Below, one piece after another: positions 43,444-64,000 of a stretch of 64,000 nt of DNA (positions within the stretch are counted from its first letter, which is position 1; every line of letters starts with the position of its first letter). The notes below the pieces were generated by a model. That model was not told the origin of the DNA. It ran no database searches and saw only the letters and a list, made by a program, of their open reading frames with translations. The stretch covers positions 62,001 through 126,000 of the IMG/VR virus record IMGVR_UViG_3300027573_000779. One strand, 5' to 3'. Both the position numbers and the translations under genes were made by a program.

Positions 43444-43446
43444 TAT

Positions 43447-46400: not shown

Positions 46401-46911
46401 AATTCTAAGAAGTTCAACTCAAAATCAGCTTTGTGTTGCTAGGATTAAAACTACTCAAAATAACAATGTTAATTGTGTAGCCCGAATTAAAACTACAAGT
46501 AGTAGAATAATTACTTGTATTTCAAGAATCTCTAAGTCTAGCACCCAAAATCAAACCGGTGTTGCTAGAATCAGAACTAGCACCAGAAATAGTATTTCTT
46601 GCTTAGCTAGAATCAAAACCACTACTTTAAACTCAACAACAGGTAAAGGTAGGATTCAAACTACTTCTAGACATAGCAATACTGGATTAGCAAAAATTAG
46701 AGTTTTAAAGACCCAAACTCTTACGGGTATAGCTAGAATTTTCGGAACTCAAAGAAGAACGACAACCGGTTTAGCTTTTATATTCCCTTATAGTATTACA
46801 GAATTACCTAAAAAGGAAATTATTGCTACTATTTTGGGTCAAAAAGTGACGGGTCCTCAAGGTGTCAGAATTGGACTAATTATCAAGGAGGTTATTGTTA
46901 GGGTTCCATAG
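43447..46911 (+). CDS. Fibre-like protein with proprotein-convertase P-domain and QTGxARI repeats
   Basis: YPSTINVTG...ILLVSPSG...NGTWSLYV...IKSWGLSF (P-domain); roughly 40 repeats. Confidence 0.7.
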   Translation: MSTRLYLNWNESGYNASLSKYYSGWQSGSSRFSVYGLVQKEGITDRYAPNHLDFPITTGFIPFAMSKALSEPLVSGVYNTGLFSGISTYLCGKTGTFAIQVGIYNFDGSQLKSEIFPVTTGRNIVITDSVQGKYLTDIFPNTGLHSGFTADRGDRLGIVYGFYNRTNSTSNFHFESAATTNIGDFSFSETPAEVFDLPQLGTFKNPWIEFSNNFQFVKIKNIQGKAAISRGARDIRGTARIATPPYYYENTTPIILPYYGGGSTYPSTINVTGLDSSKTSVTVWINGFAYTNPRNVEILLVSPSGRNIVLMGDNSPSTTSVSGLNLTFNQSSPHIMGASKRLSGVSYLPTLNNESRFFPPAYSGIIDNTIANSNLNVVSGDDPNGTWSLYVLTQDARIGGIKSWGLSFANNAAQVAHFSLSGSFGPLTVPETQSGRARIKVTRTPTTNWMYSIKTGGGDPEITDFVSGYSFGEAILKSTGTYEYIYPYAIVGDFLQSFSGVGGNRNHIEFYFSDPEWGSAVYLRNEQPIFPTNDGLFWSNGNQAYEITAGALHNSGIWELQRLLFPAQIGLAKIIKLNVNNQTAVARIFNTVRWSINGVARIAGAGAQSYDQLGKARISTTTQRTQTGLARILTTSQRTQTGIARILNTSRWSQTCISRIKVTTTQTQSCRARIQVTTRNSQTGLARIKATSSRVQTGLARILNTTRNTQTGLSRIKTTSNWSQTCKGRIKVSTSNIQTGVARIRVSTNRTQTALARILNTSRTSQTGRARIRTTTQNSQTGVARIKAATSRSQTGLARILNTSRFTQTGVARIKNTISWTHTGVAYIAALGSQIRVQLGKARILNTVRYSQTGKANIKHIRSYTQTGIARIRCTINRTNSGLARIKASISQSQLCVARIKTTSSFSCQGKARIQRASQWTVNGLARVKVTDNNSQTGVARIKATTQNSTQGKGRVLRTIQQSQTGKGYITVSAASNRTQTGIARILRSSTQNQLCVARIKTTQNNNVNCVARIKTTSSRIITCISRISKSSTQNQTGVARIRTSTRNSISCLARIKTTTLNSTTGKGRIQTTSRHSNTGLAKIRVLKTQTLTGIARIFGTQRRTTTGLAFIFPYSITELPKKEIIATILGQKVTGPQGVRIGLIIKEVIVRVP
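45148..46783 (+). repeat. Coding tandem repeat, 42-nt / 14-aa period
   Basis: For example QTGLARILTTSQRT QTGIARILNTSRWS QTCISRIKVTTTQT. Confidence 0.9.
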
Positions 46912-46937
46912 TTAATTTCAGTGTAAAATTAAAAGAT

Positions 46938-47279
46938 ATGGCAGACATTTATGATATTAGTGTAATTCAGGGCGAAAACATCTATTTGAGGGTTGTAGCT
47001 CTAGATGTTAACCAAAACCCTATTGATTTAACTAACTACACAGTGTCGGGCTATGCCAAGTACCGTTATACTGATACAGGAATAGTTTTAAACTTAAGAC
47101 CCGCAATTCACAGTAGTTATATAAGTGGCTACATTGATATTAACGTGCCGGAAACCGGGACCGCCCCTCTTCCTGTAATGCAAGGGGTTTATGATATTGA
47201 AATTCACAACCCTTTTACCAGTTATACCACAAAAGTTATAAAAGGTCTTTTTAATGTAGAACCGGAGGCGACAAGATGA
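46938..47279 (+). CDS. Small Ig-like virion protein (BppU N-terminal-like)
   Basis: IQGE...PIDLTNYTV...GVYDIEI...KGLFNVEPEATR. Confidence 0.6.
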   Translation: MADIYDISVIQGENIYLRVVALDVNQNPIDLTNYTVSGYAKYRYTDTGIVLNLRPAIHSSYISGYIDINVPETGTAPLPVMQGVYDIEIHNPFTSYTTKVIKGLFNVEPEATR

Positions 47280-47773
47280 AATTAGTAGATATTGTAGATG
47301 CACTATATCGTGAATTGGAAAATCCAACAGATATTTCCATAGCTGCTATCCATTTCTGGATGGAATCAAACTTAGGAAACTTAAATATAGCTGTAAACAC
47401 CGATTATAGCTTTAATACCTCCACAAGACAAATAAACGATAATGGCGGGAATGAGATATCAAATTTAGAAGATATTGCTATTTATAAACAACTTTATAAA
47501 GTTCATCGTGCTAAAGTCTTGGTTAGGCGTCATTTGGGAGCAGCAAGCACCGAAAGTATTATTCAAATTGATTCAGACGGTAGCTCAATTCGAAAGGTGA
47601 ATAAAACAACTTTAGCCGCCGAATACCGCCAACTTCTAAAAAATGAAGAGGATACATTAGACAATTTGGTTAAAAATTATGGTCATAATAGTACTCTACC
47701 TCTGCAAGTGGTTGGAGATGATACGGTTGCGGCTTATGAAGACGTTTTAGACCCCAATCCAAGAATAAGATAA
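47276..47773 (+). CDS. Putative head-tail adaptor
   Basis: Helical protein at the start of the neck gene block; positional inference. Confidence 0.45.
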   Translation: MKLVDIVDALYRELENPTDISIAAIHFWMESNLGNLNIAVNTDYSFNTSTRQINDNGGNEISNLEDIAIYKQLYKVHRAKVLVRRHLGAASTESIIQIDSDGSSIRKVNKTTLAAEYRQLLKNEEDTLDNLVKNYGHNSTLPLQVVGDDTVAAYEDVLDPNPRIR

Positions 47774-47774
47774 A

Positions 47775-48209
47775 ATGGCAGATTTGGTTTCAACGGCAGA
47801 CAGAACAGCGTTTATTAGTGGTTTAATTAATCACTTTGATACGTTTAAAGCTCCAATTATAGTTCATAAAGAACCTTTGACTCAGGTGGTGAACGAGAAT
47901 CAAAATCCTTTTATGGGATATGGGCCAATTGAGACTGATGTAACTTATGTTCCAGTTAGCGGCACTTTTTACGCAATAAAAGTTACTCATGATAGTATAA
48001 ACAATAATAATCTACCAATTATTAACACTCAACTGCCAACCAACACTATAAGAGTTAAGGTCTCTGGAGACGCAAAAAACTACATTTCTCAAGGCAAAAC
48101 AACAGCAATTACTTTCTTGGGCGAAATGTATAATCAAATCAGCGTCCCAATGCCCAAAAACTTTCTTGGATTTATTTTTTATTATTACGATTTAACTAAA
48201 GTTGAATAA
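47775..48209 (+). CDS. Putative head closure/stopper protein
   Basis: Size and position in neck block. Confidence 0.4.
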   Translation: MADLVSTADRTAFISGLINHFDTFKAPIIVHKEPLTQVVNENQNPFMGYGPIETDVTYVPVSGTFYAIKVTHDSINNNNLPIINTQLPTNTIRVKVSGDAKNYISQGKTTAITFLGEMYNQISVPMPKNFLGFIFYYYDLTKVE

Positions 48210-48211
48210 AC

Positions 48212-48835
48212 ATGGCAAAATATACAACAATCAACATTAATGTCTTAAATAAAGCAATTCAAAAAACTGCTAAATCTAGGACTAATTTTATGTTTAACGC
48301 TGCTAGAACAAAATTTGTGGCCGCTAAACAGAATATGTTGCGTGAGTTTGATGAGCATCCCGTTACTCAAGAATTGAAAGCTGGTCCTGAAGCAGAAGGA
48401 AACCCAAGTGGCACTTTAGGTGGACGCGCCAATCTTTATGCTTTTATTGGTTTTCCTGCCGAAACAGAACCAACAGAGATTATAAGAAGTGCCTTAGAAA
48501 GCTTTGTTAATATCTTAAATAACCCTACAATAACCTTTGGTTACAGGTCCGCGACATTTAGTTTTTCTGTCGTATATCCTTCTTTAACAGAGATTTATAA
48601 AGCGACCCCTTCACCTTTTAGTAGCAAAAGTTGGGTTAAAGGGATTGAAGATGGCATGTGGGGATTAACTCATTATTTAAATGGACTATATACAAACCCT
48701 CCAAAAGACTTTAGTGATTGGTCTAGGTCGGGACCTGCTATTGAATCTAAGTCCCAAGTAAGAGCAGATTCGTTTGAAGCTCGCCCTTATATGAAAGAAA
48801 TTCTTGAACATTTTGTAGCAAGAGTCAGCACATGA
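48212..48835 (+). CDS. Putative neck/tail completion protein
   Basis: Position; C-terminal ARPYM motif typical of HK97 gp10-like proteins. Confidence 0.45.
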   Translation: MAKYTTININVLNKAIQKTAKSRTNFMFNAARTKFVAAKQNMLREFDEHPVTQELKAGPEAEGNPSGTLGGRANLYAFIGFPAETEPTEIIRSALESFVNILNNPTITFGYRSATFSFSVVYPSLTEIYKATPSPFSSKSWVKGIEDGMWGLTHYLNGLYTNPPKDFSDWSRSGPAIESKSQVRADSFEARPYMKEILEHFVARVST

Positions 48836-49686
48836 GACCTCAATATGCCAATAGATTAATTTCAAGTTTTAACCTCTGGTTTAATAATACTCTTTTGAGG
48901 GAGGGGCAGGCTTATCAAACCACAACCTCTATCTTTTACCCAATTGGACAGGTTTACTATGGACTTTATACCTATGCAACTCCTTACAATCAATTCGTTT
49001 CAGATTATTCAGTAACGGGCGCGACGATTATCACTGGGGTTTATTTAAACGGAACCTTTGTTTCAACTGGCGTAAGTGGTTTAAAGGCAATAGATTACGA
49101 AAACGGCAGGGTTCATTTTACTGGCCAATTACCCTCAACCATTAGAGTTAGCGGCACTTTTTCCTTTAAAGAATTTAATGTTCAAATAACCGAAGAACAA
49201 GAAGAAAAGCTCCTTTTTGAAACAAAGTATAGCCCGCGTCCAAAACTAGGACAAGCTCCAACAGGTTTATGGGCAAGCACTTGGACCTATCCTATTATCT
49301 TTTTAAAGAACGTTGCAAGCGACAATAAACCGTTTGCTTTTGGAGGACAAGATGACTCAATTTATCAAATTTCCGCAATGATACTAGCTGACAGCCAATT
49401 TAACTTAGATGCTTTAAGCTCATTATTTGTGGATAAAACAAGAACAATATTAGGAATGTTAAATGAAAACGAATATCCGTACAATGTCTATGGTAGTTTT
49501 AAAACAGGACTATATAACTATACTGGCCTTGTTGCTAATAAAGATTATTCTTTTATAAATGATATCCATATATCTAAGTTCCAACCCAGTATTTATAGTC
49601 AGATGAAATTAGTGAATCCCGGCATTCATTTTGGTGTAATTGATTTTGAGATTAGTAAGGTAAGATATCCTAGACTAGGAACTTAA
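48832..49686 (+). CDS. Putative tail terminator protein
   Basis: Immediately before the tail tube gene; YPIIFL...PFAFGG. Confidence 0.45.
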   Translation: MRPQYANRLISSFNLWFNNTLLREGQAYQTTTSIFYPIGQVYYGLYTYATPYNQFVSDYSVTGATIITGVYLNGTFVSTGVSGLKAIDYENGRVHFTGQLPSTIRVSGTFSFKEFNVQITEEQEEKLLFETKYSPRPKLGQAPTGLWASTWTYPIIFLKNVASDNKPFAFGGQDDSIYQISAMILADSQFNLDALSSLFVDKTRTILGMLNENEYPYNVYGSFKTGLYNYTGLVANKDYSFINDIHISKFQPSIYSQMKLVNPGIHFGVIDFEISKVRYPRLGT

Positions 49687-49746
49687 AATTACTGTTCTCA
49701 TATTAATAAAACAGTTGTAATTAAACTTAGAAAACAGGACTAATTT

Positions 49747-50853
49747 ATGGCAAGAAACAGAGTTATTTATCAATCAGAGGGTGTATTTGCTGGTCAAAGA
49801 ACCCCTTGCACCGGTGTTAATCATACTGGCGCGGCTGATGTAAAAGAAATTTATCGTGTCCAAAGCGCGAATTATTCATTCAACCTTGGAAAACGAGACG
49901 TTAATCAATTTGGTGAACTCGCCGCAATCGATAGGATTCTAGTTGACCCTCCTACCGTTTCGCTCGATTTTACCTATTTGCTGGCCAATGTCTATAATGA
50001 ACAGGCATTGGGAATGACAGTTGGGATAAGCACTAATCCTACATCTAATGCTTTTTCAGGCATTTTTGCGGGTGCCACCGACGAAAAAGCTTACTGGGTT
50101 AAGACGGTTGCCTATGGTACTGACCTTCACGGTCTACCGTCTACTGGTTATGTTTTCGGCGCAATTGGTTTTGGTAACGGGTATATTAGCTCGTACAGTA
50201 TTGACGCTGCCGTAGGAGATTTCCCAAGAGCGAGCGTTCGTGTTGACTGCTCAAACATGAAGTTTGACAACTGGCTCAGCACCGACGAAGCAAAACAAAG
50301 CCCTTGTGTTAATAAAGAAAATGGAACACTCATTGCCGCAGATACTTATAGACTTCCTTCTGGAACGTCTACAACTTCTGCCCTTGACCAAACCACCGTT
50401 CTTCGTCCCGGTGACGTAGTTATGACTTGGGATAATGCCGCTGCGGCCACTATGGGCACGGCTATTAACGATGCCAAAATTCAAAGTTTCACTTTGTCTA
50501 GTGATATTTCTAAGACTCCGTTGAATAAGCTTGGAAGCAAGTTTGCATATTCGCAAGAAACCAACTTCCCAGTTACTGCCAGCCTTCGAATTACTGCTGC
50601 TGTGGGTGATATGAACACCGGTTCTCTTACCCAACTTCTGGAATCTACTGGAGTTAATACTGTGGGTGTCAAAATTTTTGCTCCTACGGGTTCTACCGTT
50701 AACTTCGGCTTTGACCTTAAGGGTGCTCAGCTTGATAGCCAAGAATATAGCTCCAGTATCGGTGATAGCAAAACTGTAACTATGAACTTCAGTGTTCCTA
50801 TTGCAGGCGCTAACGACCTTACTCGTGGTATTTTCCTAAGCGGAAGAGTCTAA
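49747..50853 (+). CDS. Major tail tube protein
   Basis: RVQSANYSF...DVNQFGEL; precedes chaperones and tape measure; followed by a strong terminator. Confidence 0.75.
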   Translation: MARNRVIYQSEGVFAGQRTPCTGVNHTGAADVKEIYRVQSANYSFNLGKRDVNQFGELAAIDRILVDPPTVSLDFTYLLANVYNEQALGMTVGISTNPTSNAFSGIFAGATDEKAYWVKTVAYGTDLHGLPSTGYVFGAIGFGNGYISSYSIDAAVGDFPRASVRVDCSNMKFDNWLSTDEAKQSPCVNKENGTLIAADTYRLPSGTSTTSALDQTTVLRPGDVVMTWDNAAAATMGTAINDAKIQSFTLSSDISKTPLNKLGSKFAYSQETNFPVTASLRITAAVGDMNTGSLTQLLESTGVNTVGVKIFAPTGSTVNFGFDLKGAQLDSQEYSSSIGDSKTVTMNFSVPIAGANDLTRGIFLSGRV

Positions 50854-50874
50854 TCCTGTTGTAAAATAAACTAG

Positions 50875-50907
50875 ATAAGCCCGAAGAAATTCGGGCTTAT
50901 TTTTTTT
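50875..50907 (+). terminator. Intrinsic terminator
   Basis: ATAAGCCCGAA-GAAA-TTCGGGCTTAT then T run. Confidence 0.92.
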
Positions 50908-50966
50908 GTTCTTTTTTTGGGAAACCTTGTGTAAAGATTAGTAGGTAAAAGGTCAGTTCCAAGGTT

Positions 50967-51281
50967 ATGGACATAAATAGTGAAAATCTGAAAGATTATA
51001 TTCTCTTTCATGTAACTAGAAAGATAACAAATCTTTATAAACATATACTTTTTATTCTGGAAGATTTGCGCGATGAAAAGTATTCAATGCAAGACCCAAA
51101 GAGTTATTCGCAAACCAGAAAACGGGTTTTGGATTTAGGAAATGACGCCATAAGAGAAATTAACGAACATTTTAAACATTTAGAGGTACAAATTAATGAA
51201 AACAAAACCCAATATCCAATCGGTGATTCGGGAACGTTTGTGTTTGCAAAGTCTTCAAAAAACAATGGAAGAAAAGTTTAG
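50967..51281 (+). CDS. Hypothetical protein
   Basis: Preceded by TGTGTAA at 50928 and AGGTAAAAGG. Confidence 0.6.
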   Translation: MDINSENLKDYILFHVTRKITNLYKHILFILEDLRDEKYSMQDPKSYSQTRKRVLDLGNDAIREINEHFKHLEVQINENKTQYPIGDSGTFVFAKSSKNNGRKV

Positions 51282-51429
51282 GGTGACGCCCAAGCTCGAA
51301 TATATTAAATCTACAGCTTTTTTAATTAAATTTAAAAACTGGGATGATAGCACTAAAAAAGACTTTATTAAAAATTTAGGCGGAAAGGTAAATTTTAAAC
51401 AAACACAGGAGTTTTTAAATACATTATGA
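51265..51429 (+). CDS. Small hypothetical protein
   Basis: Fills the gap; ATGA overlap with next gene; start uncertain. Confidence 0.4.
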   Translation: MEEKFRVTPKLEYIKSTAFLIKFKNWDDSTKKDFIKNLGGKVNFKQTQEFLNTL

Positions 51430-52151
51430 AAAAATTGCACGAGTTCACGGTATATAAGGAAACCGAAATAGAAGTTACGGTAAAGGATGAAAACGATAAG
51501 GACGTAGTAAAAAAGGAAAAGAAACGCGAGCCTTTTAAGTATTTTATCGCTAAACCTACCCGAAATCAAATTGATGAAGCAGACTTTTTCTATGCTCAAA
51601 AGTTTAATGAGGCGGCTAAAGCAGGACTTTTAACTAGAGCCTTGCTCGCTAAACGTTATTCAAACGATGGCGGCTCAATGAGTGAACCGGATAAAGAACA
51701 GTATGTATCGCTTTATACCGCCCTTTTTACCAAGGAAAATGAATATAAATCTTTAGCCGGTTTGCCGGAAGATAAGCAGGACAAGGAGAAAATAAAGAAA
51801 GTTACAGAAGAAATTATTGAGCTTCAAAAAGAAATTCAAGATTTTGAAGCTACCCAAATGAGTCTTTACGACCAAACTGCCGAAAGTTGGGCTAGGAATA
51901 AAACTATTCTTTGGTGGGTTCTTTTCCTGTCATATAAGTATACTGACGGCGAAAATTTTGAACCTGTTTTTAAAGGCCAGATTTTTGAGGAAAAAGACGC
52001 TGTTTATGGGGAAATTTGGGATTCAGAGGATAGTTTTCAGTTGGAAGTTGTTAATAAATTTGTCTTCTTTGTTAGTTTTTGGTATACAGGTCGCGCCAAT
52101 AAGCCAGAAGATTTTGCCGAAATAGCTAAAAGATTTGAACCAGAGTCCTAA
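51426..52151 (+). CDS. Putative tail assembly chaperone (gpG-like)
   Basis: Charged helical protein between tube and tape measure genes. Confidence 0.55.
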   Translation: MKKLHEFTVYKETEIEVTVKDENDKDVVKKEKKREPFKYFIAKPTRNQIDEADFFYAQKFNEAAKAGLLTRALLAKRYSNDGGSMSEPDKEQYVSLYTALFTKENEYKSLAGLPEDKQDKEKIKKVTEEIIELQKEIQDFEATQMSLYDQTAESWARNKTILWWVLFLSYKYTDGENFEPVFKGQIFEEKDAVYGEIWDSEDSFQLEVVNKFVFFVSFWYTGRANKPEDFAEIAKRFEPES

Positions 52152-52172
52152 AAATAAACTAACGTCCTGTTC

Positions 52173-52201
52173 GGCCCTTACCTAAAGTAGGGGCTTTTTT
52201 T
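52173..52201 (+). terminator. Intrinsic terminator
   Basis: GGCCCTTAC-CTAAA-GTAGGGGCT then T run. Confidence 0.8.
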
Positions 52202-52204
52202 GTA

Positions 52205-53221
52205 GTGAATAAACTAGATGAAATTAAACATAAAATTGCTCTTGCTGATATTTTAGTAGGTTATTCCACAGTAATATTTAATAATCAAACCATCTATATC
52301 AAACATTTTACCTTTCAAGAACACCTAAAAGTTGAACAAGAATATGAAACAAGCTTTGAAATAGCTGTTAAAAAGGGCGTTCCAACCATTGAAGACAAAA
52401 TAAAAGAACTTATTAAAGAAAAAGAGTGGACCGACGAAGAAGAAAAACAGTTCCAAAAACTTCCTCAAGATATAGGTATTTTAAAAGATACCAAGAAAAA
52501 ATTCTTCTTGGAAAAAGACGTGGAAAGAATTGATAAAAATATTAAGGCTGAAGAGGAGAAATTGCAAAAATTGGAGACTAAAAGAAACAGCCTATTAGGT
52601 TACACCGCAGAAACTTACGCAACAAAAAAAACTAACGAACTGTTTGTTTTTCATACCTTTAGAAATCAATTAGAACTAGATAAAACTTTATATTCTTGGG
52701 AAGAGTTTAATGAGTTGGATGAAAGTCAAATGGGCGATTTAATTAATCTTTTTAATAAAGATTGCGTTAGATTTGCCCCTCAAGAGATGAAAAAAACAGC
52801 TATTTTAAACTCTCACATGCAAATGATTTATTTGGCGGGAGAAGATTTGTGGAACTTTTATGGTAAGCCGGTAGTTCAATTTACCGCCCGTCAAAGCGAG
52901 CTTTATAGCCTAGGACGTTATTTTAAAGGACTTATTTCGGACTTAAAAGATAAGGTCACTAGCGATGTTTTAGACGACCCGGATAAACTAATTCAATATG
53001 TAGACTCTCAAAAAGCCGCTGAAACCCTTGGAACCGCCAAAATTCCTGAAGGAAAAGAATCAATTGGAGGAGGAACGGCTATTGTGGGAGCTTCCACTGA
53101 AGATTTAAAGAAATTAGGCTTAGATAAAGAAAAGGGCGCTGATAGTTTGGCTGAAGAAGCTGGAAAGAAAGGCGGCTCTTTAAATATGGAAGATTTATTA
53201 AAATTACACGGTTTGGTGTAA
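52205..53221 (+). CDS. Putative tail assembly chaperone (gpT-like)
   Basis: Directly before tape measure; FYGKPVVQFT..Q..L and DDPDKL motifs. Confidence 0.55.
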   Translation: MNKLDEIKHKIALADILVGYSTVIFNNQTIYIKHFTFQEHLKVEQEYETSFEIAVKKGVPTIEDKIKELIKEKEWTDEEEKQFQKLPQDIGILKDTKKKFFLEKDVERIDKNIKAEEEKLQKLETKRNSLLGYTAETYATKKTNELFVFHTFRNQLELDKTLYSWEEFNELDESQMGDLINLFNKDCVRFAPQEMKKTAILNSHMQMIYLAGEDLWNFYGKPVVQFTARQSELYSLGRYFKGLISDLKDKVTSDVLDDPDKLIQYVDSQKAAETLGTAKIPEGKESIGGGTAIVGASTEDLKKLGLDKEKGADSLAEEAGKKGGSLNMEDLLKLHGLV

Positions 53222-53242: not shown

Positions 53243-56200
53243 ATGGCCAATGATGGAGTAAGAGTACCTGTAGTACTAGAGTGGAATCAAGCGATTCAAG
53301 ACTCTATAGCACAGGCACGAAGAATCCCGCCAGTTAACGTTAGAGTTAATACTGGCCGGATTGGAGATGGTTTTAAACACGCGTCTAAAGAGGCCGAACA
53401 GTTTGAACGAGCCTTAGCTAGCGCCCAAACCCGCGTTTTAACCCTCGGGGCGTCTTTCGGCGCTCTGTTCGCAATTCAAAGAGGCTTTAAAGCCTTAATC
53501 CAAACAACCATTGATGTTGAAAAGCAGCTTAAAGACATTAATGTTATTTTGGGAGTAAGCACAAGCAGTCTTAGCACCTTTTCTGAGCAACTGTTTGGTA
53601 TAGCTAAAAATACCGGCCAAAGCTTTGAAACAGTAGCTAAAGCCGCCTTGGAATTTAGCCGCCAAGGTCTTGGAGTTCAAGAAACTTTAAAAAGAACCAA
53701 TGACGCCCTTATTTTAACCCGCCAAACTGGATTAGATGCCGCTGAAGCAACCGACGCTATCACTGCCGCTATTAACAGCTTTAGTCAAGCTGCTCTGACT
53801 TCAAGCGATATTGTTAATAAGTTTGCTAAGGTTGACCAAAACTTTGCAGTTAGTTCCGCTGACTTAGCAGAAGCTATTAAACGGGTGGGTTCTAGCGCTG
53901 AAGAAGCGGGAGTAGGAATTGATGAACTTATTGCTTTAGTTACCTCTGCCCAACAAATAACTCAACGTGGCGGTGCTGTAATTGGTAACGCTTTTAAGAC
54001 TATTTTTACTCGTACAGCCAGACCCCAAGTGCTTAATGACCTTGAACAACTTGGAATTACTGTCAGAAACGCTCAAGGAGATATTCTCCCGGCTGTTCAA
54101 ATCCTCACAAATTTGGCGAACAGTTATGATAATTTAAGTCAGGCCCAACAATCTGCCGCCGCTGAACTTGTAGGGTCTGTTTATCAAATTAACATTTTAA
54201 AAGCTTCTTTAAAAGATTTGGGTAAAGAACACTCGTTTTACTCTAAGGCTCTCAATGACTCTTCAACCGCAACTGACGAAGCTGTTCAACGTAACGAAGC
54301 TTTAAATACAACTCTAGCGGCTTTAATTAATAGAACTAAAGAAAACGTAAGGCAGTTTTCGGCTAATGTGGGACAGGACACTTTTGGCCCTTCAATTCGA
54401 AGAGTTGCTGGTCTTGCTAATGGTTTCTTGGAAAATGCTAATAACATTTTAGGTGCCGATAAAGCTGAAGTGGCTTTTAAAGAAATTGGTTCAGTTCTTG
54501 GAAAAGGACTGGTTAGGGGTTTTGGACAGTTCTTACAAGGTCCGGGTTTGGCGCTGATTGGTGTTGCACTGTTTAAATTTGCCAGTCAGTTCGCAAGGCT
54601 GGCAACAGAAGCTTATAAACTTTTGACTGACCTTAACAAAAGCACTGACCAAAGGGCCGCTATTGAGTCTCGCGTTTTAGGCGTTTTAAGACAAGAGCCT
54701 AATATTTATAGCCAAATACTAGGAAATAGTTTAAGTGTTGTTCAGGCACAAGAAAAGGTTCTTCAAATTATAACGGCACAAAATGCAGCCTTAAACGCCC
54801 AAAAAGCAATAGCTTCACAACTAACATCCACCCTCATTAATACTGGCGCAGTAGGAGTCAATCCTAAGACTAGGGAAGTGGTGACCAATCCAGCTTTAAA
54901 AAAAACACGCTCAGAAGGTAGCATTCCGAACTTTGCGGTAAATATTTTGGACGCTCAAAAGGAAATTGAAGGCGCTTATAAAGCTAAATACATTCCCGGC
55001 CAAGTGCGCCAAGTGGGAGACGCAGTAATTAATAATGCAGAAAGTATTAAAACTAGCGCCGCACACCCCCAAGAAAAAGCTATAGTGCCGCCTCAAGGCA
55101 GCGAAGCGGGACAAAAATACAAAGAAGCTTATCGAACTATTTATGGTAAAAGCCCTTATGGGGATGCAATTACCAAGGGGAGAAACGCTTTTCAGGTTCA
55201 GTGGATGAAGTCAATCGGCGCTAAAAGAGGGTTGGATTTAACTAATCCAGATAATATTTTAGTGCTTGCAAAACAGTTCAGAGAAACCTATGGGTCACAA
55301 CAGGGGCTGTTGCCATTTAATAAAGGAAAGGTGCCAAGTTTTGCCTCTAGTTTAACTTTATCAACTTCAAAAAACTTTGTTAAACTCGCAAAAGAAAGGG
55401 GTGTCAAAATTGTCAGAGAAGACCAGAGGGTTCCCCAAGGTAGTGCTTTTTATATTCGTTCTGGCGCAGAAGGAAAGAAAATAGTTCTTCCAAAAAAGAC
55501 TCCTATTGATGTTCTTGCTCATGAAGTAGGACACGACCTTTCATATGATTACTTAAATATATACTCTCCAAGACTTTTAAAAGAACAATCAGCTAACATC
55601 GAAGCCTTAAAAAGAATTCCCACAGAAAAAGAAAGACAGGGATATCGTGAAACACTAAGTCCTGCAACTAAAACATATAAAATTGGAATATTAAGAGGTA
55701 TTTTGAAGGATTTTGCTCCTAATATAGACGACGAAAGTATTTTTATTAATGAACTCAGAAAGCAGGAAGGCAAACATTCTGATAGATATTCCCCCGTAAT
55801 AAGAGCGCACAGTACCGCTTTGCGTGCTTTGATAAAAGATATAGGACCAAAAAAAGTAAAAGAGATATTGTCACAATTGCCCGAAATAGACAAAACCGAT
55901 TTAAAAAGAAAACCTTACGCTTCGGGGCACGTTCCAAACTTCAACCTCTTCAGTAAGGTTTCTACTGAAGACGAAGCTAACCGAATGGTTAAAGTCTCTT
56001 CGGTTAACGCGCTGAAGCCTTATTTGAAGAAATCAGAAGGTGATGTGCCAAATTTTGCCTCAGGGCGCGTCCCGAACTTTGCTTCTAGTTTATCTCTTTC
56101 AACTAGTAAAAAACTATTAAGGGAAGCTAAAAAAACAGGAATAAAAACACTAAGAACCAACGAACCAATACCTTATTATGATATTCCTTCGAGTTCGGTT

Positions 56201-59200
56201 CGCGCTCCAAAAGGAACTTCTTTTGATGTTATTGCGCACGAACTTGGTCACGGATTTTCTTATCAGGAAAACCCCCTTCTGGAAAGAGTGCGTTCAGATA
56301 TAAAATCAGAAGTGGGCGCTAATACTGAAATTTTAAACAGATTATCAGGAAAAGAAAAGAAATCATTTGCTAAACAAATGCTTAATCCTTTTAAAACCTA
56401 CAAGATAACATCTTTAGTTGATTCTTTAAGAGGACTGGTTCCCCTACCTGAGATGGTCAAAATCATTGGACAACACAGAATAAGAACCAAAGATTTAGGA
56501 AAAAGAGCCGGGGATTTAGGTAATTATAGTGATTTTAGAAAATCTCAATCACAAGTTCTAAGAGACATTGTTAAGACAGTGGGACCACAAAAAGTTAAAG
56601 AGCGCATTTCGAATCTTTCACCGGTTAATAAACAAGACTTAAAGGCGCGTTATTTTGCTTCAGGGCGAGTGCCCAACCTTGCCAAAAGTTCCTACTCTTT
56701 GGTTCATAGTACAACTCCACAGTTGGCTAAGACAATAGAGTCAGAGGGCCTTAAACCTAGAAGAAAAGAGGGCTTTGAAAAGGGGTATTTTTCGCAACAT
56801 GTTACTAACTTTGAGAAACTTGCTGAAGAAGTCAGAGCAAGCGAGTTTCCTGATTTGCCTAGTAGACTAAACTCGGTTTATTTAACTCCAGAAAGTCGAA
56901 AATTTAATAGGTTTGGAACGCATTTTAAAGTTGCCCCAAATAAAGAAAGCTATATTTTCAACTTAAAAAAGATAGATAAAGCTTTTGATTTAGCGGGTCC
57001 TTATGGGACGAGCACTGTTCCAAATACTAAATTACGCGAACTTGCTCGTGAATATTTCCAATCCGGCATTCCTTTAAATAGACAAAATCTAAATAAAGTT
57101 TTAGAAAAAGAGAAAGAAAATACGGGTTATGACTATGGAGACAATCCTTTTTTTGAAATCCTGACGCCGGGACCAGTTTCAGCTAAAAAAATAAAAAGGC
57201 TTAACTCAAAAGGCGCGGTTCCAAACTTTAATATTGATGTTAATGGTATTTTTTCACAACTTCCTGAGCGTGAACGCGTTGTAATAGAAGAACACGCCGA
57301 TGGATTAAAATTGGGCGAAATTGCAAAGAAATATAATATTTCAAGAAATAAAGCAAGCTCTATTTTCAATCGCGGACGTAATAGTTTTATAAAGCAATAC
57401 GGTTTGGCTAAAAAGGGTTTTGGAGAGTTCGCGGCACAAGGTAAAATCCCAAACTTTGCTAAAATCTACAAACTTCGCACTGGATTTCCTGAACATATTT
57501 TAAAACAAATTCAATCATTACATGGTAAACAATTACGAATATTTCCGACTAAGGACCACTTTCCTAAAGAGTTGCGAAACGATATTATAAAGTATGGAGA
57601 AAACAATATTCCCAAGTTTGACCCAAACTTAATAATCGACAGTAATGAAATTATTGAAGTTGAACACGATGATAATATTCGAGGACTTCATGGAACCAAT
57701 ATTGAGAAAATTGTAGTAAAGAAAACAACGCCTTATTTAGACCAACATCTGGCAATTGCCAAAGATGGCGGTATTAAGAGTATTTGGCACACTTTAAATC
57801 CAGACAGGTTTAATAAACCACAAAATCCTAGAAATAGAATTTATAGTCAGGGCCAAGTGCCGAATTTTGCTTCTTCATTTTCTAATATCAGTTTAGCAAA
57901 AGCTCCACATAATTCTACTGCGATAAGAAGACTGGGAATACCAAAAACCGGCAGTTATGCTTCCTATTACTTTGACAGGAATAAACACATAAACATAAGT
58001 TTCATTGAATCTAACCAAAAAGGGGACGCTTTTAGGTTATTTAAAGCTTTGGGGCGCACCGCCCGTAGAATTAAGCGTCCAATTATAAGTGAAACTCTAG
58101 TCAAATCGTCCAAACAACCTGACGAAAACCAAACTAATTGGGAACAACTTTTAGTAAGATATCCTCAATTACGCTACCGGGACTTACCAAACGCTTCAAC
58201 CAATGGGGTTTTTCGGCCAAATCTTCTAGGAAGTGAAGAACGAAGCTTTAACACCTTTGAAGAACTAAAAACTATAGTAAACCAAGTTCCTTCAGATATT
58301 TTCAAAAAAAACCTTAGAACAGGATTCACAAGTGTCGGCAACCTCTCCACTACTTTTAAAAACAAAGGGCAAGCGCCAAATTTTGCTTACATTCCATTCA
58401 TTTCTCCTCTTGTCGGGCGCGTGGTGACTAATTTGGTGCATTCTGGCGAAGGTTTTAGTATGGCGGCTTTAAAACCTGCTTTTAATTTTGCTAAGGAAAA
58501 GGGCATAAAACAAACGATTAAAAATATTATTTTAGACAAACCGGCGCACCAAGGAACTTTTTTTGGTTTTAACGAAGAAGGAAGAGAAGACTTCGGCTTG
58601 TCCGAATTTGGTTTTCGAAAAATGTTTGGTTTGGAACCTAGAATTCCACCAAATCCAGAAGTTAAACTCCGTCAAATTCCGGGCAAGAAAAACACCTATG
58701 CAATAGGTGGAAGAAATCCACTACAAAATTTTGGAGTTAATCTAACAACAAAAACTCCTCAAAATGTTAGATATCGCCCTCAAGACCCAAATACAATTAG
58801 AAGTTTGTTTAGGAGTCCAGATTTCGGAGCTTTTAACCTAGATGCCAACACCAAAAACAGAAAAATTCGCTATTCTGACACTTGGGATTTTGCACTCCAT
58901 GGGAGCGAAAAGTTGAATTTTAAGGAATTAAAAGACGAACTAAAAAGACGTTTTATTAGACAGCCCGAACTTGAATCTATCAAAGATGAATTTAAATTAA
59001 ACGTTCTTCCAAAAGTTTTAAAACAAAACCCTTTAAAAACAATTAAGGATATTAAAGAACTTTTTCCCAAAAACAGACTTAAGAGTGTTTTGAATCCTGC
59101 GAATCTTGTTTTCCAAGGTAATGCGGGAGCCAGTCTTTTTACTAATGAGCCGGTTCATTCTTATGGTAGTTCACAGTTAACAAAACTGTTTAGGAAGCTA

Positions 59201-62200
59201 GTAAACAGTGTCTCGTCACCAGCAACATTCGTAGGCCAAGTTACAAATCCCGATGACAAAAAACTTCTTTTTGATAGTCTTACTGACCTTGCAAATAGCG
59301 ATATAGACCTTCAAAAAACCAAAGCTACGCCTGCCGCCAAATTTTTAGGTACAAAATATAAACAAAACAAATTAAAAGAATCATTTATAACACTTCAGGA
59401 TAGATTGTATAATAGATTCAATTTTAATCCTTCTTCAAAACGTGATTTTAGTAATCGCAAGGACGCTTTTCCAATTGGCAAGCCGGGAATCAACATTTTT
59501 TCGGCTATAGAAAAATATGGTAGAGCCAAAGGTGAAGTGCCAAATTTTGCTTCCTCTTTGCCTTTATCAACCGCCAAAGAATTATTAGCTCTAGCCAAAG
59601 AAAGAAAGATTCGCATTACTAGAGATAAAGAACTTGGAGCTTTTCATAGATTTTCAGAAAGAAGAATTAATCTTCCTAAAGGCGAATCAATTGAAACTTT
59701 CGCGCATGAATTGGGTCACAGTTTATCTACCGATAATTTTTATAAATTTGCTAATGCAAATCGGATAGAAAGAGAAGTAATGGCTAATCAAGAGATTGTC
59801 CAACGACTGGTTGACCCAAAAGAACAAGAAACATTTAAAACAAACACTCTTGAATCTTTTAAATCTTATAAAAGCGGAATAATACTAGAACGGGTTTGGC
59901 CACAATTGCAAATTCCAGAAGAAAAACGCAATCAATATATTGAAATTCAACAAAAAGAATTTAAAAAAACTCAGAGAAGTAAAGGTATAAGTCCAGAGCA
60001 TCGAAGTAGCGCTGCTGTATTACGAAAACTTGTTAAAGATTTTGGGCCAAAAACCATAAAACAACTTATTAGTTCCACTCCCCGCGACGAGAGGGAAGCT
60101 TTAAAACTGCGCTATTCTTTTGGAAAAATCCCTAGTTTTGCCGTAATGAGTCCGCAGGAAAAAGCCTTTAAAGATATCGCTTTAAGACTAAATTCAGAAA
60201 AACATATAGGATATGGCCCACAAAAATATTTTTTACCATTTTTGTCTGATAAAACCGTAAATCCCTATCAATCATTATATTATAGCACCCCATACGAACA
60301 ACAACAAACAAAAAAAGAAGAAGTTGAAAAGAAACTAATAAATTTTATTCCCGAAGGTAAAAATTTCCTAAGACCATATAACAATATTCTACAGCAAGCC
60401 CCCGCTGTTAAAGATGCTTACAGGTTTGTAAGAAACCTTTTTGGTGATTTTGCTGGTCGTGGTTCTGGCGACCCTCTTGAGCGTTCTGCAAACAACTATT
60501 TGAAGATAATGCGTGGTTTACAAAAAACCGGTGTTTTTAAAGAAATAAACAAACTGTCGCCGCAACAATTATTAAGAGGAGGGATAAAATCAGGTAATCT
60601 TTCTCTATACGGTTTTGGGGGAGACCCCCTTCCTGAATCAAAATTCAAAACAAGAGCTTTGGAGTCTGGCAATCGCGACCTTGTGGCTAACGACCCATTA
60701 TATTCGTTTCATCAAAGGTTTGAAAGTAAAAAAGAAGAATTAAAACTAAGAAAACAGTTTAAAGCTTTTACAAGCTCCTTTGTAAACTCTGTTTCTAAAT
60801 TCAGGAACATTCCAAGAATAAAAAATAAACTTGAAGAAATAACTGGCGGTGACCATACAAGACTAGCCCTAACTGCAAAAAAATATATTCCGCCTGAAAT
60901 TTATGAACGTTTAGCTTACCTAAGCAAAACCTTTGTAAATACAAAACGGCAGGCTTATAATCTTGGTGTAGACATTGATTCTCCATTTTACTTTCGTGGA
61001 CAAAGTAGAAGCGAAGCGGCAATTTTAGACAAACTTAAAGAATTTACCTCTTTGGGATTTGCAAGTCAGACAGATAGATTAGGCGTTACTTTAAATAATA
61101 ATCCATTGTTTGCTGCTGCTTTTGGCGTTACTTCCGGCAAAGAGTTTGGAAAACCGGGGTTATTGGGAATTTATAGAAAAAAACAAATCGACAGTAGAGA
61201 ACCAAGAAGGCTAGGAGAAAACATCTCTTCTGGCAGGCTTAGAATAGATGACCTGTTTGGTTTTATTGATTTGGCGGCTCAAAAATTTGTTCCAGCGTCT
61301 TCTCTAAGTAAAGTATATGGTCCAGAACACGCGCCCTCTTCTGAAATTCTGGAGAAAACCAAATCTTTGCTAAGTAAAGAAGATTACGACATAATAAAAT
61401 CTCAAAGTTTACATAAAGATTATAATCCAAACACACAATTAACTCTTACAAGAGGATTAGATGTTCGTAGAGGAAAGAAAATATCAGACTACCGTGGTCC
61501 AAGTCAAACTAACCCCAATCTTGGCGAACTTTCTTTTAAAGAGTTGCTTGACTATCTAAAACACTCAATAGATACTACCCAACCGGGAGTTATTCCAACA
61601 GGTGGGCCAGAAAGTTCTTTTGCAAATGTCAGTTCTGACGCTATTTTAGTTAAAAACCGAAAAACCGCTAAAGAATTAGAAAATAAACCCGTTCAAAAAG
61701 AGGGACAGGCGCATTTCCAAAGGCTGGTCAGTCAATCAGAATTATTCGGATACGACAGACTACAAAACCTTTTTGATAACCCAAATCTTTCAACAGAAAG
61801 AAAAAACAAACTGTTGAGAAGCGGAATCGTTGTTAATCTTCCTGAAATTAGAGGGCAAATTGGATATAGAACGGCAGCACCCGAACGCGAATACCCAATT
61901 TTAACATCAACCCCAAAAACTTCTGGACCTGTAAATATTGGCAGATTATTTGCTGTTTCGCCTTATATATTCAAAAAATCAGGTTATTCAAAAGGAAAGT
62001 TGCCAAACTTTGCAAAAGCTCCGCAATTTTCTCAACTTCAATTAAAAGAAATTTTGGGCGGCTCAACTGAAGCTAGAAAAGCTGTTTTCCAAGACAGTCA
62101 ATTTGTTTTAAAATACGGAAAATCTTCTGGTCACGCTATAAATGAATTTGTTTCAAATAGATTATTTAATGCTTTTGGCGAAAACGTGCCCGAAGCTCAA

Positions 62201-64000
62201 TTAATTGACACTCCTCAAGGTAAAGCCTTTCTGTCTAAATTCATCCAAAGTCAATCTTTTGGAGAACTGTATGATAAAGGAGATATTAATACAAGACAAA
62301 GATTAATTCAAGGAGTTAAACCTTCTTTTGCGGCTCATGCGGCCTTTGCTAATTGGGACGCATTTGGCGATTGGAATCCAGCAGGAGCCAATGTAAGACT
62401 AGATTCAAATAATAGACAGTTTTTTGTGGACTTGGGTGGGGCTTTAGCTTATAGAGGTTTGGGCGCACCTAAACCCAATTTTGGTCCAGAAGTGCCCGAA
62501 CTGCGTTCTCTTATTGATTATGCATCTAATCCTTATGCTAAAGCCGCTTTTAAATTTCAACCAGAAGAGCTAAAATCTAATGTTGCCGATTTTCTAAAAA
62601 GAACTCCGTCAAATTTAAGCGGTTTGTTAGAGTCTTTAAATAGTGAAACCCAAGGGGACCCACATATCACTAAAGCACTAAAACAAATTCCTAATCGTTT
62701 AAATTATCTTAGAAACTTTATTAAATCCAAAGGTTCTATCCCAAATTTCGCGTTCTTTTCAGGAATAGCTTCTGTCGCGCAATCACTTACAGGAGCTAAA
62801 AAACTTCCAAAACAAAACATTCGTGCTAACATTACTCCCGAAGAAATGGAGGCAATCTATTTTAATTACGCTAAAACCATTTATAATCCTCAAAAAGGAA
62901 AAATCCCAGTAGGTTTAAATTATTTTGCGAACAAGGCTTTCAATTCCGCGATGTTTGAACATCAAGGCTCTTATGTTTTTGGTTCTCACGATAACGAGTT
63001 GTTCCTTCCAACTCACTTTGCTCCAAAAAGCTTAAAGGGCGGATTTGCGGCGCAAAAAGCATTAAGTGAATATTCTAATGTAATGTATGCCGTAACTCAG
63101 GAAATGACCCCAATGCTAGAAAGACTTGGGTTCAGTGTGGCTAAATCTGGAGTTAAAGTTCCCTTCAGGGGCGGAACTGCATTAAAAGACTTTTTGGTTT
63201 CTGATAAACTGCGAACCCCAATGTTTCTTACCAATTTCCTTTCTCAAATGAAACAGGGAGCGGGTTCTAAATACGTTAAACAATATTTAACAAGAGAAGA
63301 CCAAGCTAAATTTAGTCATTATTATCCTTATGGTGGGGGAACTCCGGGCGAAGATGAAGCTATTGAATACTTAAGAAACAGAGGAATTACAGCTAATCAG
63401 GGCAAAATTCCTTCGTCTAATGCGTATTTAAAAGCTAAGTTAACGCACGTCCCCAATTTTGCTCTTCTTGACTCTCTTAGGAGTTTAATTGATGTTCAAA
63501 ACAATAAGTTTTTGGGTTCGAAATTACCCAATACACTTGGAGAAATTTACCCTGTTATAAGGGACCAATTTCCTAAAATAGGACCAATCTTAAAGGGAAT
63601 TAACCCTAGATTACTACTAGATGATATTAATGTTGATAGTGGGACATTATATCGAGGTTTTGCTAGAGCTGTGCGCTCAAAAACATATGACGGTCCTTTT
63701 AGAGCATATGACAGTCCTATTAAACCCTCCGAAACCGTCACAGGTGAACTTGACTTTTTATATAACTTTACGCACGCTTTAAATAGAGGCCAACCGTTAA
63801 AATTCCAAAAAGCCTCGCTAGAAGCCCTGTTCCAAATTGGCGCTCAAGCAAAACAAGAAGGGATAACTGATAAAGTAGGTATCAATACAAATAGCGACCC
63901 ATTTTTTAGAAACCTCGGAAACCCGCAACAACATAGAGATTTTGCACGAAACTTTTTAAATTTAGATAAATCAAAACCCAATCAATCCTTTATTCAAAAA
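53243..64000 (+). CDS. Giant tape measure protein fused to an array of enzyme-like modules (3' truncated; absent from ORF track)
   Basis: Hand translation from ATG 53243 shows no stop in 3586 codons. First ~560 aa are TP901-type tape measure (AALEFSRQG, NFAVSSADLAEAIKRVGS, GAVIGNAFKTIFTR); the rest is modules separated by GxVPNFA linkers. Confidence 0.93.
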   Translation, partial: MANDGVRVPVVLEWNQAIQDSIAQARRIPPVNVRVNTGRIGDGFKHASKEAEQFERALASAQTRVLTLGASFGALFAIQRGFKALIQTTIDVEKQLKDINVILGVSTSSLSTFSEQLFGIAKNTGQSFETVAKAALEFSRQGLGVQETLKRTNDALILTRQTGLDAAEATDAITAAINSFSQAALTSSDIVNKFAKVDQNFAVSSADLAEAIKRVGSSAEEAGVGIDELIALVTSAQQITQRGGAVIGNAFKTIFTRTARPQVLNDLEQLGITVRNAQGDILPAVQILTNLANSYDNLSQAQQSAAAELVGSVYQINILKASLKDLGKEHSFYSKALNDSSTATDEAVQRNEALNTTLAALINRTKENVRQFSANVGQDTFGPSIRRVAGLANGFLENANNILGADKAEVAFKEIGSVLGKGLVRGFGQFLQGPGLALIGVALFKFASQFARLATEAYKLLTDLNKSTDQRAAIESRVLGVLRQEPNIYSQILGNSLSVVQAQEKVLQIITAQNAALNAQKAIASQLTSTLINTGAVGVNPKTREVVTNPALKKTRSEGSIPNFAVNILDAQKEIEGAYKAKYIPGQVRQVGDAVINNAESIKTSAAHPQEKAIVPPQGSEAGQKYKEAYRTIYGKSPYGDAITKGRNAFQVQWMKSIGAKRGLDLTNPDNILVLAKQFRETYGSQQGLLPFNKGKVPSFASSLTLSTSKNFVKLAKERGVKIVREDQRVPQGSAFYIRSGAEGKKIVLPKKTPIDVLAHEVGHDLSYDYLNIYSPRLLKEQSANIEALKRIPTEKERQGYRETLSPATKTYKIGILRGILKDFAPNIDDESIFINELRKQEGKHSDRYSPVIRAHSTALRALIKDIGPKKVKEILSQLPEIDKTDLKRKPYASGHVPNFNLFSKVSTEDEANRMVKVSSVNALKPYLKKSEGDVPNFASGRVPNFASSLSLSTSKKLLREAKKTGIKTLRTNEPIPYYDIPSSSVRAPKGTSFDVIAHELGHGFSYQENPLLERVRSDIKSEVGANTEILNRLSGKEKKSFAKQMLNPFKTYKITSLVDSLRGLVPLPEMVKIIGQHRIRTKDLGKRAGDLGNYSDFRKSQSQVLRDIVKTVGPQKVKERISNLSPVNKQDLKARYFASGRVPNLAKSSYSLVHSTTPQLAKTIESEGLKPRRKEGFEKGYFSQHVTNFEKLAEEVRASEFPDLPSRLNSVYLTPESRKFNRFGTHFKVAPNKESYIFNLKKIDKAFDLAGPYGTSTVPNTKLRELAREYFQSGIPLNRQNLNKVLEKEKENTGYDYGDNPFFEILTPGPVSAKKIKRLNSKGAVPNFNIDVNGIFSQLPERERVVIEEHADGLKLGEIAKKYNISRNKASSIFNRGRNSFIKQYGLAKKGFGEFAAQGKIPNFAKIYKLRTGFPEHILKQIQSLHGKQLRIFPTKDHFPKELRNDIIKYGENNIPKFDPNLIIDSNEIIEVEHDDNIRGLHGTNIEKIVVKKTTPYLDQHLAIAKDGGIKSIWHTLNPDRFNKPQNPRNRIYSQGQVPNFASSFSNISLAKAPHNSTAIRRLGIPKTGSYASYYFDRNKHINISFIESNQKGDAFRLFKALGRTARRIKRPIISETLVKSSKQPDENQTNWEQLLVRYPQLRYRDLPNASTNGVFRPNLLGSEERSFNTFEELKTIVNQVPSDIFKKNLRTGFTSVGNLSTTFKNKGQAPNFAYIPFISPLVGRVVTNLVHSGEGFSMAALKPAFNFAKEKGIKQTIKNIILDKPAHQGTFFGFNEEGREDFGLSEFGFRKMFGLEPRIPPNPEVKLRQIPGKKNTYAIGGRNPLQNFGVNLTTKTPQNVRYRPQDPNTIRSLFRSPDFGAFNLDANTKNRKIRYSDTWDFALHGSEKLNFKELKDELKRRFIRQPELESIKDEFKLNVLPKVLKQNPLKTIKDIKELFPKNRLKSVLNPANLVFQGNAGASLFTNEPVHSYGSSQLTKLFRKLVNSVSSPATFVGQVTNPDDKKLLFDSLTDLANSDIDLQKTKATPAAKFLGTKYKQNKLKESFITLQDRLYNRFNFNPSSKRDFSNRKDAFPIGKPGINIFSAIEKYGRAKGEVPNFASSLPLSTAKELLALAKERKIRITRDKELGAFHRFSERRINLPKGESIETFAHELGHSLSTDNFYKFANANRIEREVMANQEIVQRLVDPKEQETFKTNTLESFKSYKSGIILERVWPQLQIPEEKRNQYIEIQQKEFKKTQRSKGISPEHRSSAAVLRKLVKDFGPKTIKQLISSTPRDEREALKLRYSFGKIPSFAVMSPQEKAFKDIALRLNSEKHIGYGPQKYFLPFLSDKTVNPYQSLYYSTPYEQQQTKKEEVEKKLINFIPEGKNFLRPYNNILQQAPAVKDAYRFVRNLFGDFAGRGSGDPLERSANNYLKIMRGLQKTGVFKEINKLSPQQLLRGGIKSGNLSLYGFGGDPLPESKFKTRALESGNRDLVANDPLYSFHQRFESKKEELKLRKQFKAFTSSFVNSVSKFRNIPRIKNKLEEITGGDHTRLALTAKKYIPPEIYERLAYLSKTFVNTKRQAYNLGVDIDSPFYFRGQSRSEAAILDKLKEFTSLGFASQTDRLGVTLNNNPLFAAAFGVTSGKEFGKPGLLGIYRKKQIDSREPRRLGENISSGRLRIDDLFGFIDLAAQKFVPASSLSKVYGPEHAPSSEILEKTKSLLSKEDYDIIKSQSLHKDYNPNTQLTLTRGLDVRRGKKISDYRGPSQTNPNLGELSFKELLDYLKHSIDTTQPGVIPTGGPESSFANVSSDAILVKNRKTAKELENKPVQKEGQAHFQRLVSQSELFGYDRLQNLFDNPNLSTERKNKLLRSGIVVNLPEIRGQIGYRTAAPEREYPILTSTPKTSGPVNIGRLFAVSPYIFKKSGYSKGKLPNFAKAPQFSQLQLKEILGGSTEARKAVFQDSQFVLKYGKSSGHAINEFVSNRLFNAFGENVPEAQLIDTPQGKAFLSKFIQSQSFGELYDKGDINTRQRLIQGVKPSFAAHAAFANWDAFGDWNPAGANVRLDSNNRQFFVDLGGALAYRGLGAPKPNFGPEVPELRSLIDYASNPYAKAAFKFQPEELKSNVADFLKRTPSNLSGLLESLNSETQGDPHITKALKQIPNRLNYLRNFIKSKGSIPNFAFFSGIASVAQSLTGAKKLPKQNIRANITPEEMEAIYFNYAKTIYNPQKGKIPVGLNYFANKAFNSAMFEHQGSYVFGSHDNELFLPTHFAPKSLKGGFAAQKALSEYSNVMYAVTQEMTPMLERLGFSVAKSGVKVPFRGGTALKDFLVSDKLRTPMFLTNFLSQMKQGAGSKYVKQYLTREDQAKFSHYYPYGGGTPGEDEAIEYLRNRGITANQGKIPSSNAYLKAKLTHVPNFALLDSLRSLIDVQNNKFLGSKLPNTLGEIYPVIRDQFPKIGPILKGINPRLLLDDINVDSGTLYRGFARAVRSKTYDGPFRAYDSPIKPSETVTGELDFLYNFTHALNRGQPLKFQKASLEALFQIGAQAKQEGITDKVGINTNSDPFFRNLGNPQQHRDFARNFLNLDKSKPNQSFIQK
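54917..63463 (+). repeat. Dispersed in-frame linker repeat G-x-[VILA]-P-[NS]-[FL]-[AN]
   Basis: Copies start at 54917, 55325, 55925, 56039, 56063, 56663, 57212, 57440, 57851, 58367, 59531, 60122, 61994, 62732 and 63443 (THVPNFA), with a degenerate copy at 63401. Confidence 0.92.

Follow-up and report, generated by a model that had tools for sequence, protein, structure and literature searches.

A Conserved Two-Block Unit in a Giant Phage Tail Tape-Measure Protein and Its Possible Likeness to ADP-Ribosyltransferases

We analyzed a stretch of 64,000 nucleotides (herein the window; bases 62001-126000 of the IMG/VR virus record IMGVR_UViG_3300027573_000779, which comprises 208,933 bp and is rated complete by CheckV) and found that a tail tape-measure protein of 5,468 residues carries, among a string of cargo modules, a conserved unit of 355 residues. 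The unit is built of two conserved blocks joined by a variable linker, and its invariant positions include the arginines and glutamates that an initial annotation, made from the sequence alone, had picked out as marks of ADP-ribosyltransferases (ARTs). An ART of the R-S-E type, with an active C-terminal lobe and a degenerate N-terminal one, is the single most likely specific mechanism for the unit, and we put it forward tentatively.

A Giant Tape-Measure Protein with Modular Cargo

The 5,468-residue product, counted over the whole genome, is a phage tail tape-measure protein of the TP901 family. The Pfam family PF10145 (PhageMin_Tail, TP901-type) matches residues 121 through 307 (E = 1.1e-27; 97.6 bits against a cut-off of 33.2), and residues 1 through 560 find annotated tape measures of Bacillus, Lactococcus and Staphylococcus phages by tblastn at 24-26% identity (E = 1e-10 to 1e-17). 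Beyond the tape-measure domain the protein is divided into ~17 cargo modules of 8 to 624 residues, split by copies of a short peptide, G-x-[VI]-P-[NS]-F-A (herein the separator). The stretch that the initial annotation had flagged as the largest module, 60143-61993, proved to be exactly one such module (residues 2301 through 2917), flanked by GKIPSFA and GKLPNFA, and the longest of those bounded by the motif. The features in question are as follows, in window coordinates and, where given, residues (aa) of the open reading frame (ORF):

53243..64000, + strand: giant tape-measure ORF, continuing past the 3' end of the window (genome coordinates G000:C1:115243-131649)
60122..60142, + strand, aa 2294-2300: separator GKIPSFA, 5' of the module
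60143..60925, + strand, aa 2301-2561 (~260 aa): variable N-terminal part of the module, an orphan; helical in a junk-quality model (single-sequence AlphaFold of the whole module; predicted local distance difference test, pLDDT, 34)
60926..61993, + strand, aa 2562-2917: conserved 355-residue unit, one copy in each of eight giant tape measures
60965..61309, + strand, aa 2575-2689: N block, from the alignment
61310..61420, + strand, aa 2690-2726: linker, poorly conserved and of varying length in the relatives, from the alignment
61421..61975, + strand, aa 2727-2911: C block, from the alignment and predicted strands
61994..62014, + strand, aa 2918-2924: separator GKLPNFA, 3' of the module

The Conserved Unit Occurs in Eight Giant Tape Measures

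When 1.84 billion cluster representatives were searched exhaustively with phmmer, one other protein was returned, P0003 (E = 1.5e-16), which aligns to module residues 280 through 606 only; six others (P0004-P0009) came from word-index searches that used the relatives as seeds, for a total of seven. All seven are giant tape measures of 3,285-4,300 residues with the same N-terminal PF10145 domain and the same separator motif, and those that were traced lie on metagenomic phage contigs. Scans of IMG/VR, JGI metagenome contigs and 50,697 phage records (tblastn) yielded no further relatives, and the unit is known from eight proteins only among about 15 billion searched. For module residues 1 through 265, neither the exhaustive phmmer search nor the related giants provided any relative.

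The unit ends at a separator in all eight proteins, and its N and C blocks are never found apart. No other cargo module is shared by the whole set of eight, the rest being either shuffled or missing.

Alignment of the eight copies reveals 32 invariant columns out of 356 (9%), with ~25% identity to the window copy, and resolves the unit into the two blocks and the variable linker. Three of its 23 arginines are invariant, including R2585 and R2737, as are two of its 20 glutamates, E2881 and E2883; invariant cysteines and histidines are absent (0 of 4 His conserved). The invariant positions of the N block comprise F-R-G (R2585, codon 60995-60997), F-T-S-x-G (aa 2601-2605), I-Y (aa 2643-2644) and D2676. 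Those of the C block are L-x-R (R2737, codon 61451-61453), P-G (aa 2781-2782) and E-R-E (aa 2881-2883, nt 61883-61891); a conserved [ST] at aa 2791 (nt 61613-61615) is followed by S2792 (Ser in six of the eight members), and the block closes with an N-I-G-R-L-F-A-x-S strand bearing an invariant G...S.

The sequence strings on which the initial annotation had based its reading are all present where it placed them: FYFRGQSRSE at 60986-61015 (Arg codon 60995, R2585), GVTLNNNPLFAAAF at 61082-61123, LTLTRGL at 61439-61459 (Arg 61451, R2737), KHSI at 61559, GVIPT at 61586 and PEREY at 61880-61894, with E2881 at 61883 and E2883 at 61889. As a bare pattern in a single sequence they lie within chance, 43% of shuffles of the module giving [FYWL]-R-[GK] followed by E-x-E within 220 residues. 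Since both of the arginines picked and both glutamates of the ExE are invariant in the eight homologues, the pattern is more than chance, and these four residues are under strong constraint.

Likeness to ADP-Ribosyltransferases in Motifs and Model

In the seven relatives the N block presents F-R-G and, after ~30 residues, G-x-x-V-[ST]-S-S-L-x-K-A-x-G-Y; T4-type ModA/ModB have the same motif order, namely Y-R-G, then G-E-V-F-S, then S-F-T-T-S-L. The hhalign alignment places the F-R-G of the unit on the Y/W-R-G of Mod (at a probability of ~1% or less). In the ADPrib_exo_Tox family (PF03496; C3, VIP2 and iota-type enzymes) the order is Y/F-R-G, G..F, x-S-[ST]-S-L....A..F and a hydrophobic strand; the N block of the relatives resembles this order, which we take to be a lead rather than a test.

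Two hallmarks of R-S-E enzymes find counterparts in the unit. A strand-1 arginine in an aromatic-R-G type motif is matched, at the level of the motif only, by R2585 (F-R-G) and R2737 (L-x-L-[YFT]-R). The [QE]-x-E of strand 5, located at its front edge, has a counterpart in E2881-R-E2883 of the C block, which is invariant and lies at the start of a predicted strand, with an aromatic/hydrophobic strand and a further one coming after it; human ART5 is listed with the same variant of ExE, E-R-E (PMC7955679). The structure was modeled by AlphaFold with the eight-sequence alignment (pLDDT 49; 60-80 for unit residues 170 through 345). In this model the C block is made up of six strands: R2737 lies in strand 1, S2791/S2792 fall at strand 2, and strand 5 carries E-R-E at its front edge; at this low confidence, the layout is that described for ARTs (PMC7955679). 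Parsing of the domains by structure prediction, the check that the initial annotation had proposed, gave C-block strands in an ART-like layout within a model that matches no known fold.

The N block of the window copy departs from that of its relatives. It has N-N-N (aa 2618-2620, nt 61094-61102) at the place where all seven others have [ST]-S-S, and the block has no conserved ExE; an N-E is found in five of the seven relatives and is missing here. These features fit the earlier suggestion that the first domain is possibly degenerate.

We propose that the module is cargo inside the giant tape-measure protein and that its conserved unit would be an enzyme-like, two-block ART of the R-S-E type, using nicotinamide adenine dinucleotide (NAD+). 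Activity would reside in the C block, through R2737, S2791 and E2881-x-E2883, and the N block would be a second ART-like lobe that has lost its serines in this phage and is probably non-catalytic. At infection the tape measure would carry the unit out of the virion by way of the tail, and the unit would modify a target in the host, much as T4 Alt, which is delivered from the head, does. Among the domains of phage polyvalent proteins that modify proteins, ARTs are the most frequent (PMC5512222).

A further module of the same protein bears on the question as context. The module at window 56684-57211 (aa 1148-1323) has a sub-threshold match to DUF2441 (PF10386; E = 8.6e-4, 19.7 bits against a cut-off of 25), a family that Pfam places in the ART clan (PMC7955679), and it is on account of this match that we count the module as context for an ART assignment of the unit. 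It contains L-V-H-S-T-T and S-V-Y-L-T, resembling an H-Y type ART, and a homologue was not found in the other giant tape measures.

Tests of Family Membership

Several results weigh against assigning the unit to the ARTs. Neither the module nor any of the eight homologues matches Pfam, including its ART clan, at E values up to 10, and NCBIfam and PHROGs likewise give no match for the module or the homologues. A search of the genome with PF03496 returned nothing at E = 10, and profile searches of the Protein Data Bank (PDB) returned no ART and chance-level rows only. When both blocks were compared by hhalign with a nine-sequence alignment of T4-type ModA/ModB, the probability was about 1% or less. 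A search by ESM features with the whole unit gave leads in the ART clan at 0.82-0.83, below the 0.9 mark and in a range reachable by chance; with the C block alone it gave no named cluster. The ART fold is a split β-sheet of two three-stranded halves with helices at its flanks; comparison of the AlphaFold model with the PDB (Foldseek and further fold searches), BFVD and the ESM Atlas produced nothing above noise. The C-block equivalent of the S-T-S motif, which R-S-E enzymes have on strand 2, is loosely defined, the position of the G-F-I-S motif being Pro in four of the eight members. Finally, the presence of the unit in all eight proteins suits a core function of the tail at least as well as it does a variable effector.

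Two rows of the PDB profile searches were considered and set aside. A match to picornavirus VP4 (E = 0.18) is at chance level. A likeness to the L proteins of Mononegavirales (PDB 6u5o and 8fpj; E = 0.7) covers window 61775-61954 (C-block profile positions 119 through 178), where an E-R-E-[YF]...N-I-G-R-L-F-A hairpin lies against a K-E-R-E...G-R-x-F-A stretch; this too was judged to be chance.

Other comparisons were uninformative or concern a different class of ART. A predicted complex of the N block, the C block and NAD gave values of 0.09 and 0.00 for the interaction prediction score from aligned errors (ipSAE), which are not evidence either way. The H-Y-[EDQ] enzymes (Arr-ms, ART-PolyVal) have a strand-1 His and a strand-2 Tyr; the sole pointer to this class is the ESM lead at 0.82-0.83, and the unit has no invariant His and no Pfam match to the class.

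The initial annotation had inferred tandem ART-like domains. Two blocks with a variable linker are indeed present and the residues it picked are invariant, whereas the tests of ART membership were negative or uninformative and hhalign detects no relation between the N block and the C block. Because the searches found no significant sequence similarity to the ART families and the comparison of folds gave no decision, the unit is not assigned to any of them, and the ART interpretation is a candidate one. We regard as rather unlikely the fuller form of the proposal, in which the unit would be the founder of a divergent R-S-E family, a pseudo-enzyme joined to an active lobe, that became fixed in a clade of giant "polyvalent" tape measures and forms part of a string of effectors that the tape measure itself would carry down the lumen of the tail, its modules set off by a processing or docking peptide.

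Alternative Explanations for the Unit

The unit could instead be an envelope enzyme other than an ART that takes part in tail penetration, for example a new peptidoglycan or teichoic-acid hydrolase in which D2676, E2881 and E2883 provide acid/base groups and the three invariant arginines bind an anionic substrate; we hold this to be unlikely, although not negligibly so. The unit alone among the cargo modules is shared by all eight proteins, as would be expected of a function needed at every infection. Wall-degrading domains occur in the tape measures of related phages of the Firmicutes type (e.g., the lysostaphin/ALE-1-type annotations under the SPbeta-like matches), and a recognized lysin domain was not found in any of the eight proteins, which leaves that role vacant; nor did the searches return any match to an ART. 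The same family and fold searches, however, found no similarity to a hydrolase family or fold; the lack of an invariant Cys or His excludes the CHAP/NlpC and M23 types, and the contexts of the arginines and the ExE appear to us closer to those of ARTs than to known muramidase motifs.

About as doubtful is a purely structural part, in which the unit would serve in tail assembly, as a plug or anchor in the tube or baseplate, or as a trans-envelope channel, with its invariant residues needed for folding or subunit contacts. Its universal, single-copy occurrence, always adjoining a separator, agrees with such a part, as do the low confidence of the models and the lack of a recognized enzyme family. 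Against it, an invariant charged cluster (three Arg, E-R-E and one Asp) in an alignment with only 9% of its columns invariant is seen more typically at an active or ligand-binding site, and the mixed α/β prediction differs from the coiled-coil parts of the tape measure.

A single bipartite ART, with R2585 and the serine strand from the N block, E2881/E2883 from the C block and ~220 residues inserted, is improbable. In its favor, F-R-G, [ST]-S-S and E-R-E follow one another across the family just as the residues of the canonical R-S-E triad do, a convincing ExE is lacking within the N block, and the two blocks are never apart. Against it, the ~260 residues from serine strand to ExE would be unprecedented (to our knowledge the distance is roughly 40-60 residues in Mod/C3-type enzymes), an ART-like strand of the C block already holds an invariant Arg, and the window copy has N-N-N for the serines.

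Comparison with Known Systems

Among known systems the nearest to the unit are the R-S-E enzymes T4 Alt, ModA and ModB, which are likewise encoded by a phage and have an aromatic-R-G strand and, as in the C block, an E-x-E followed by an aromatic/hydrophobic strand. Their serine-rich strand followed by an L..A..F/Y helix recalls the N block of the seven relatives. Profile similarity to Mod is not significant; in contrast to Alt and Mod, the motifs of the unit extend over 300 residues and two blocks rather than about 110 residues, and the N block of the window copy is without the serines. Alt is delivered with the virion, as would be expected for the unit (PMC5512222), but the unit is carried in the tail tape measure and not in the head.

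The protein as a whole resembles the polyvalent proteins (Iyer et al. 2017, PMC5512222), which are very large, virion-associated strings of unrelated, shuffled modules and which share with it HExxH peptidase-like and possible ART-like modules. The families that are hallmarks of polyvalent proteins (MPTase, ART) have no match above the Pfam threshold in the giant ORF, whose HExxH modules give weak reprolysin-type matches below the cut-off (E = 4e-4). The differences are that the scaffold here is a tape measure, a term absent from PMC5512222, that the separators follow a strict G-x-[IV]-P-N-F-A, and that the typical ART-PolyVal family of polyvalent proteins, of the H-Y-D type, is unmatched by the unit, which lacks an invariant His.

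SPbeta-like tape measures of Staphylococcus have a homologous TP901-type N-terminal domain and also bear extra domains riding on the tape measure. They carry one or two recognizable wall hydrolases, as against ~17 mostly unrecognizable modules in the present protein, and the 355-residue unit matches no lysin family.

Enzymes on tape measures, ARTs injected by phages and polyvalent multidomain virion proteins are already known. What is new is a conserved 355-residue unit seen in eight proteins only, and a tape measure in which as many as 17 modules are strung together, set apart by copies of a peptide motif unique to this ORF in its genome. Should the unit be an ART, tape measures could carry host-modifying enzymes, by a route other than that of head-packaged Alt or of MuF fusions, and an extra family would have been missed by current profile libraries; should it be structural or a lysin, the finding would reduce to a new domain of a familiar class.

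The Separator Peptide

A strict form of the separator pattern occurs at 16 sites in the ORF and a looser form at 17, at residues 559, 695, 895, 933, 941, 1141, 1324, 1400, 1537, 1709, 2097, 2294, 2918, 3164, (3401), 3721 and 3799; the final 1,669 residues of the protein have none. The strict core, G-x-[VIL]-P-[NS]-F, is found 14 times in the genome, every time in this ORF, against 0.28 expected from composition. Across the eight related giant tape measures we count 50 separator sites, and in 42 of them position -2 is occupied by A or S.

The fixed residues of the separator show free synonymous codon variation, from which it follows that the motif is conserved as a peptide and not as DNA; a role as a DNA recombination site was rejected on this ground. 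The peptide could be a processing or docking signal. A protease with an HExxH motif acting in cis as its universal reader was also rejected, given that P0003-P0005 have the motif without any HExxH. No mention of the peptide was found in the literature searched.

Other Modules and Genome Context

Three paralogous modules of ~195 residues lie upstream of the unit, at window 55343-55924, 56081-56662 and 59549-60121 (aa 701-894, 947-1140 and 2103-2293). They match one another at E values of about 1e-25, begin with S-S-L-x-L-S-T directly after a separator, and each contains an HExxH; the only Pfam matches are weak ones of the reprolysin/thermolysin type, below the cut-off (E = 4e-4 to 6e-3). Such modules are missing from P0003-P0005, and the context of HExxH differs in P0006-P0009.

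A small module between the separators at residues 1324 and 1400 (window 57254-57379, aa 1338-1379) has weak matches to helix-turn-helix domains of the sigma-70 region 4/LuxR type (E about 1e-3, below the cut-off), and on this likeness may be a DNA- or RNA-polymerase-binding cargo.

On the 5' side of the tape-measure gene, 9 of the 10 ORFs in window 41233-53221, including one of 1,154 residues, have no PHROG match at E = 1e-3; within the same interval a 736-residue ORF weakly matches a PHROG family of unknown function (E = 4.4e-4). By these searches the virion module of the phage is essentially uncharted.

The module that directly follows the one with the Arg/ExE unit (window 62015-62731, aa 2925-3163) has a faint kinase-like match to HipA_C (E = 0.05), which taken alone is at the level of chance. 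The module after that (window 62732-63442, aa 3164-3400) has homologs in P0003 and P0004 at E values of 1e-57 to 1e-60, where the sequence makes up the N-terminal portion of the module with the Arg/ExE unit (stretches compared, aa 644-1694 and aa 776-1849, respectively). What forms a single module in those two proteins is thus present as two separate modules in the window, which shows that modules are shuffled around the separators.

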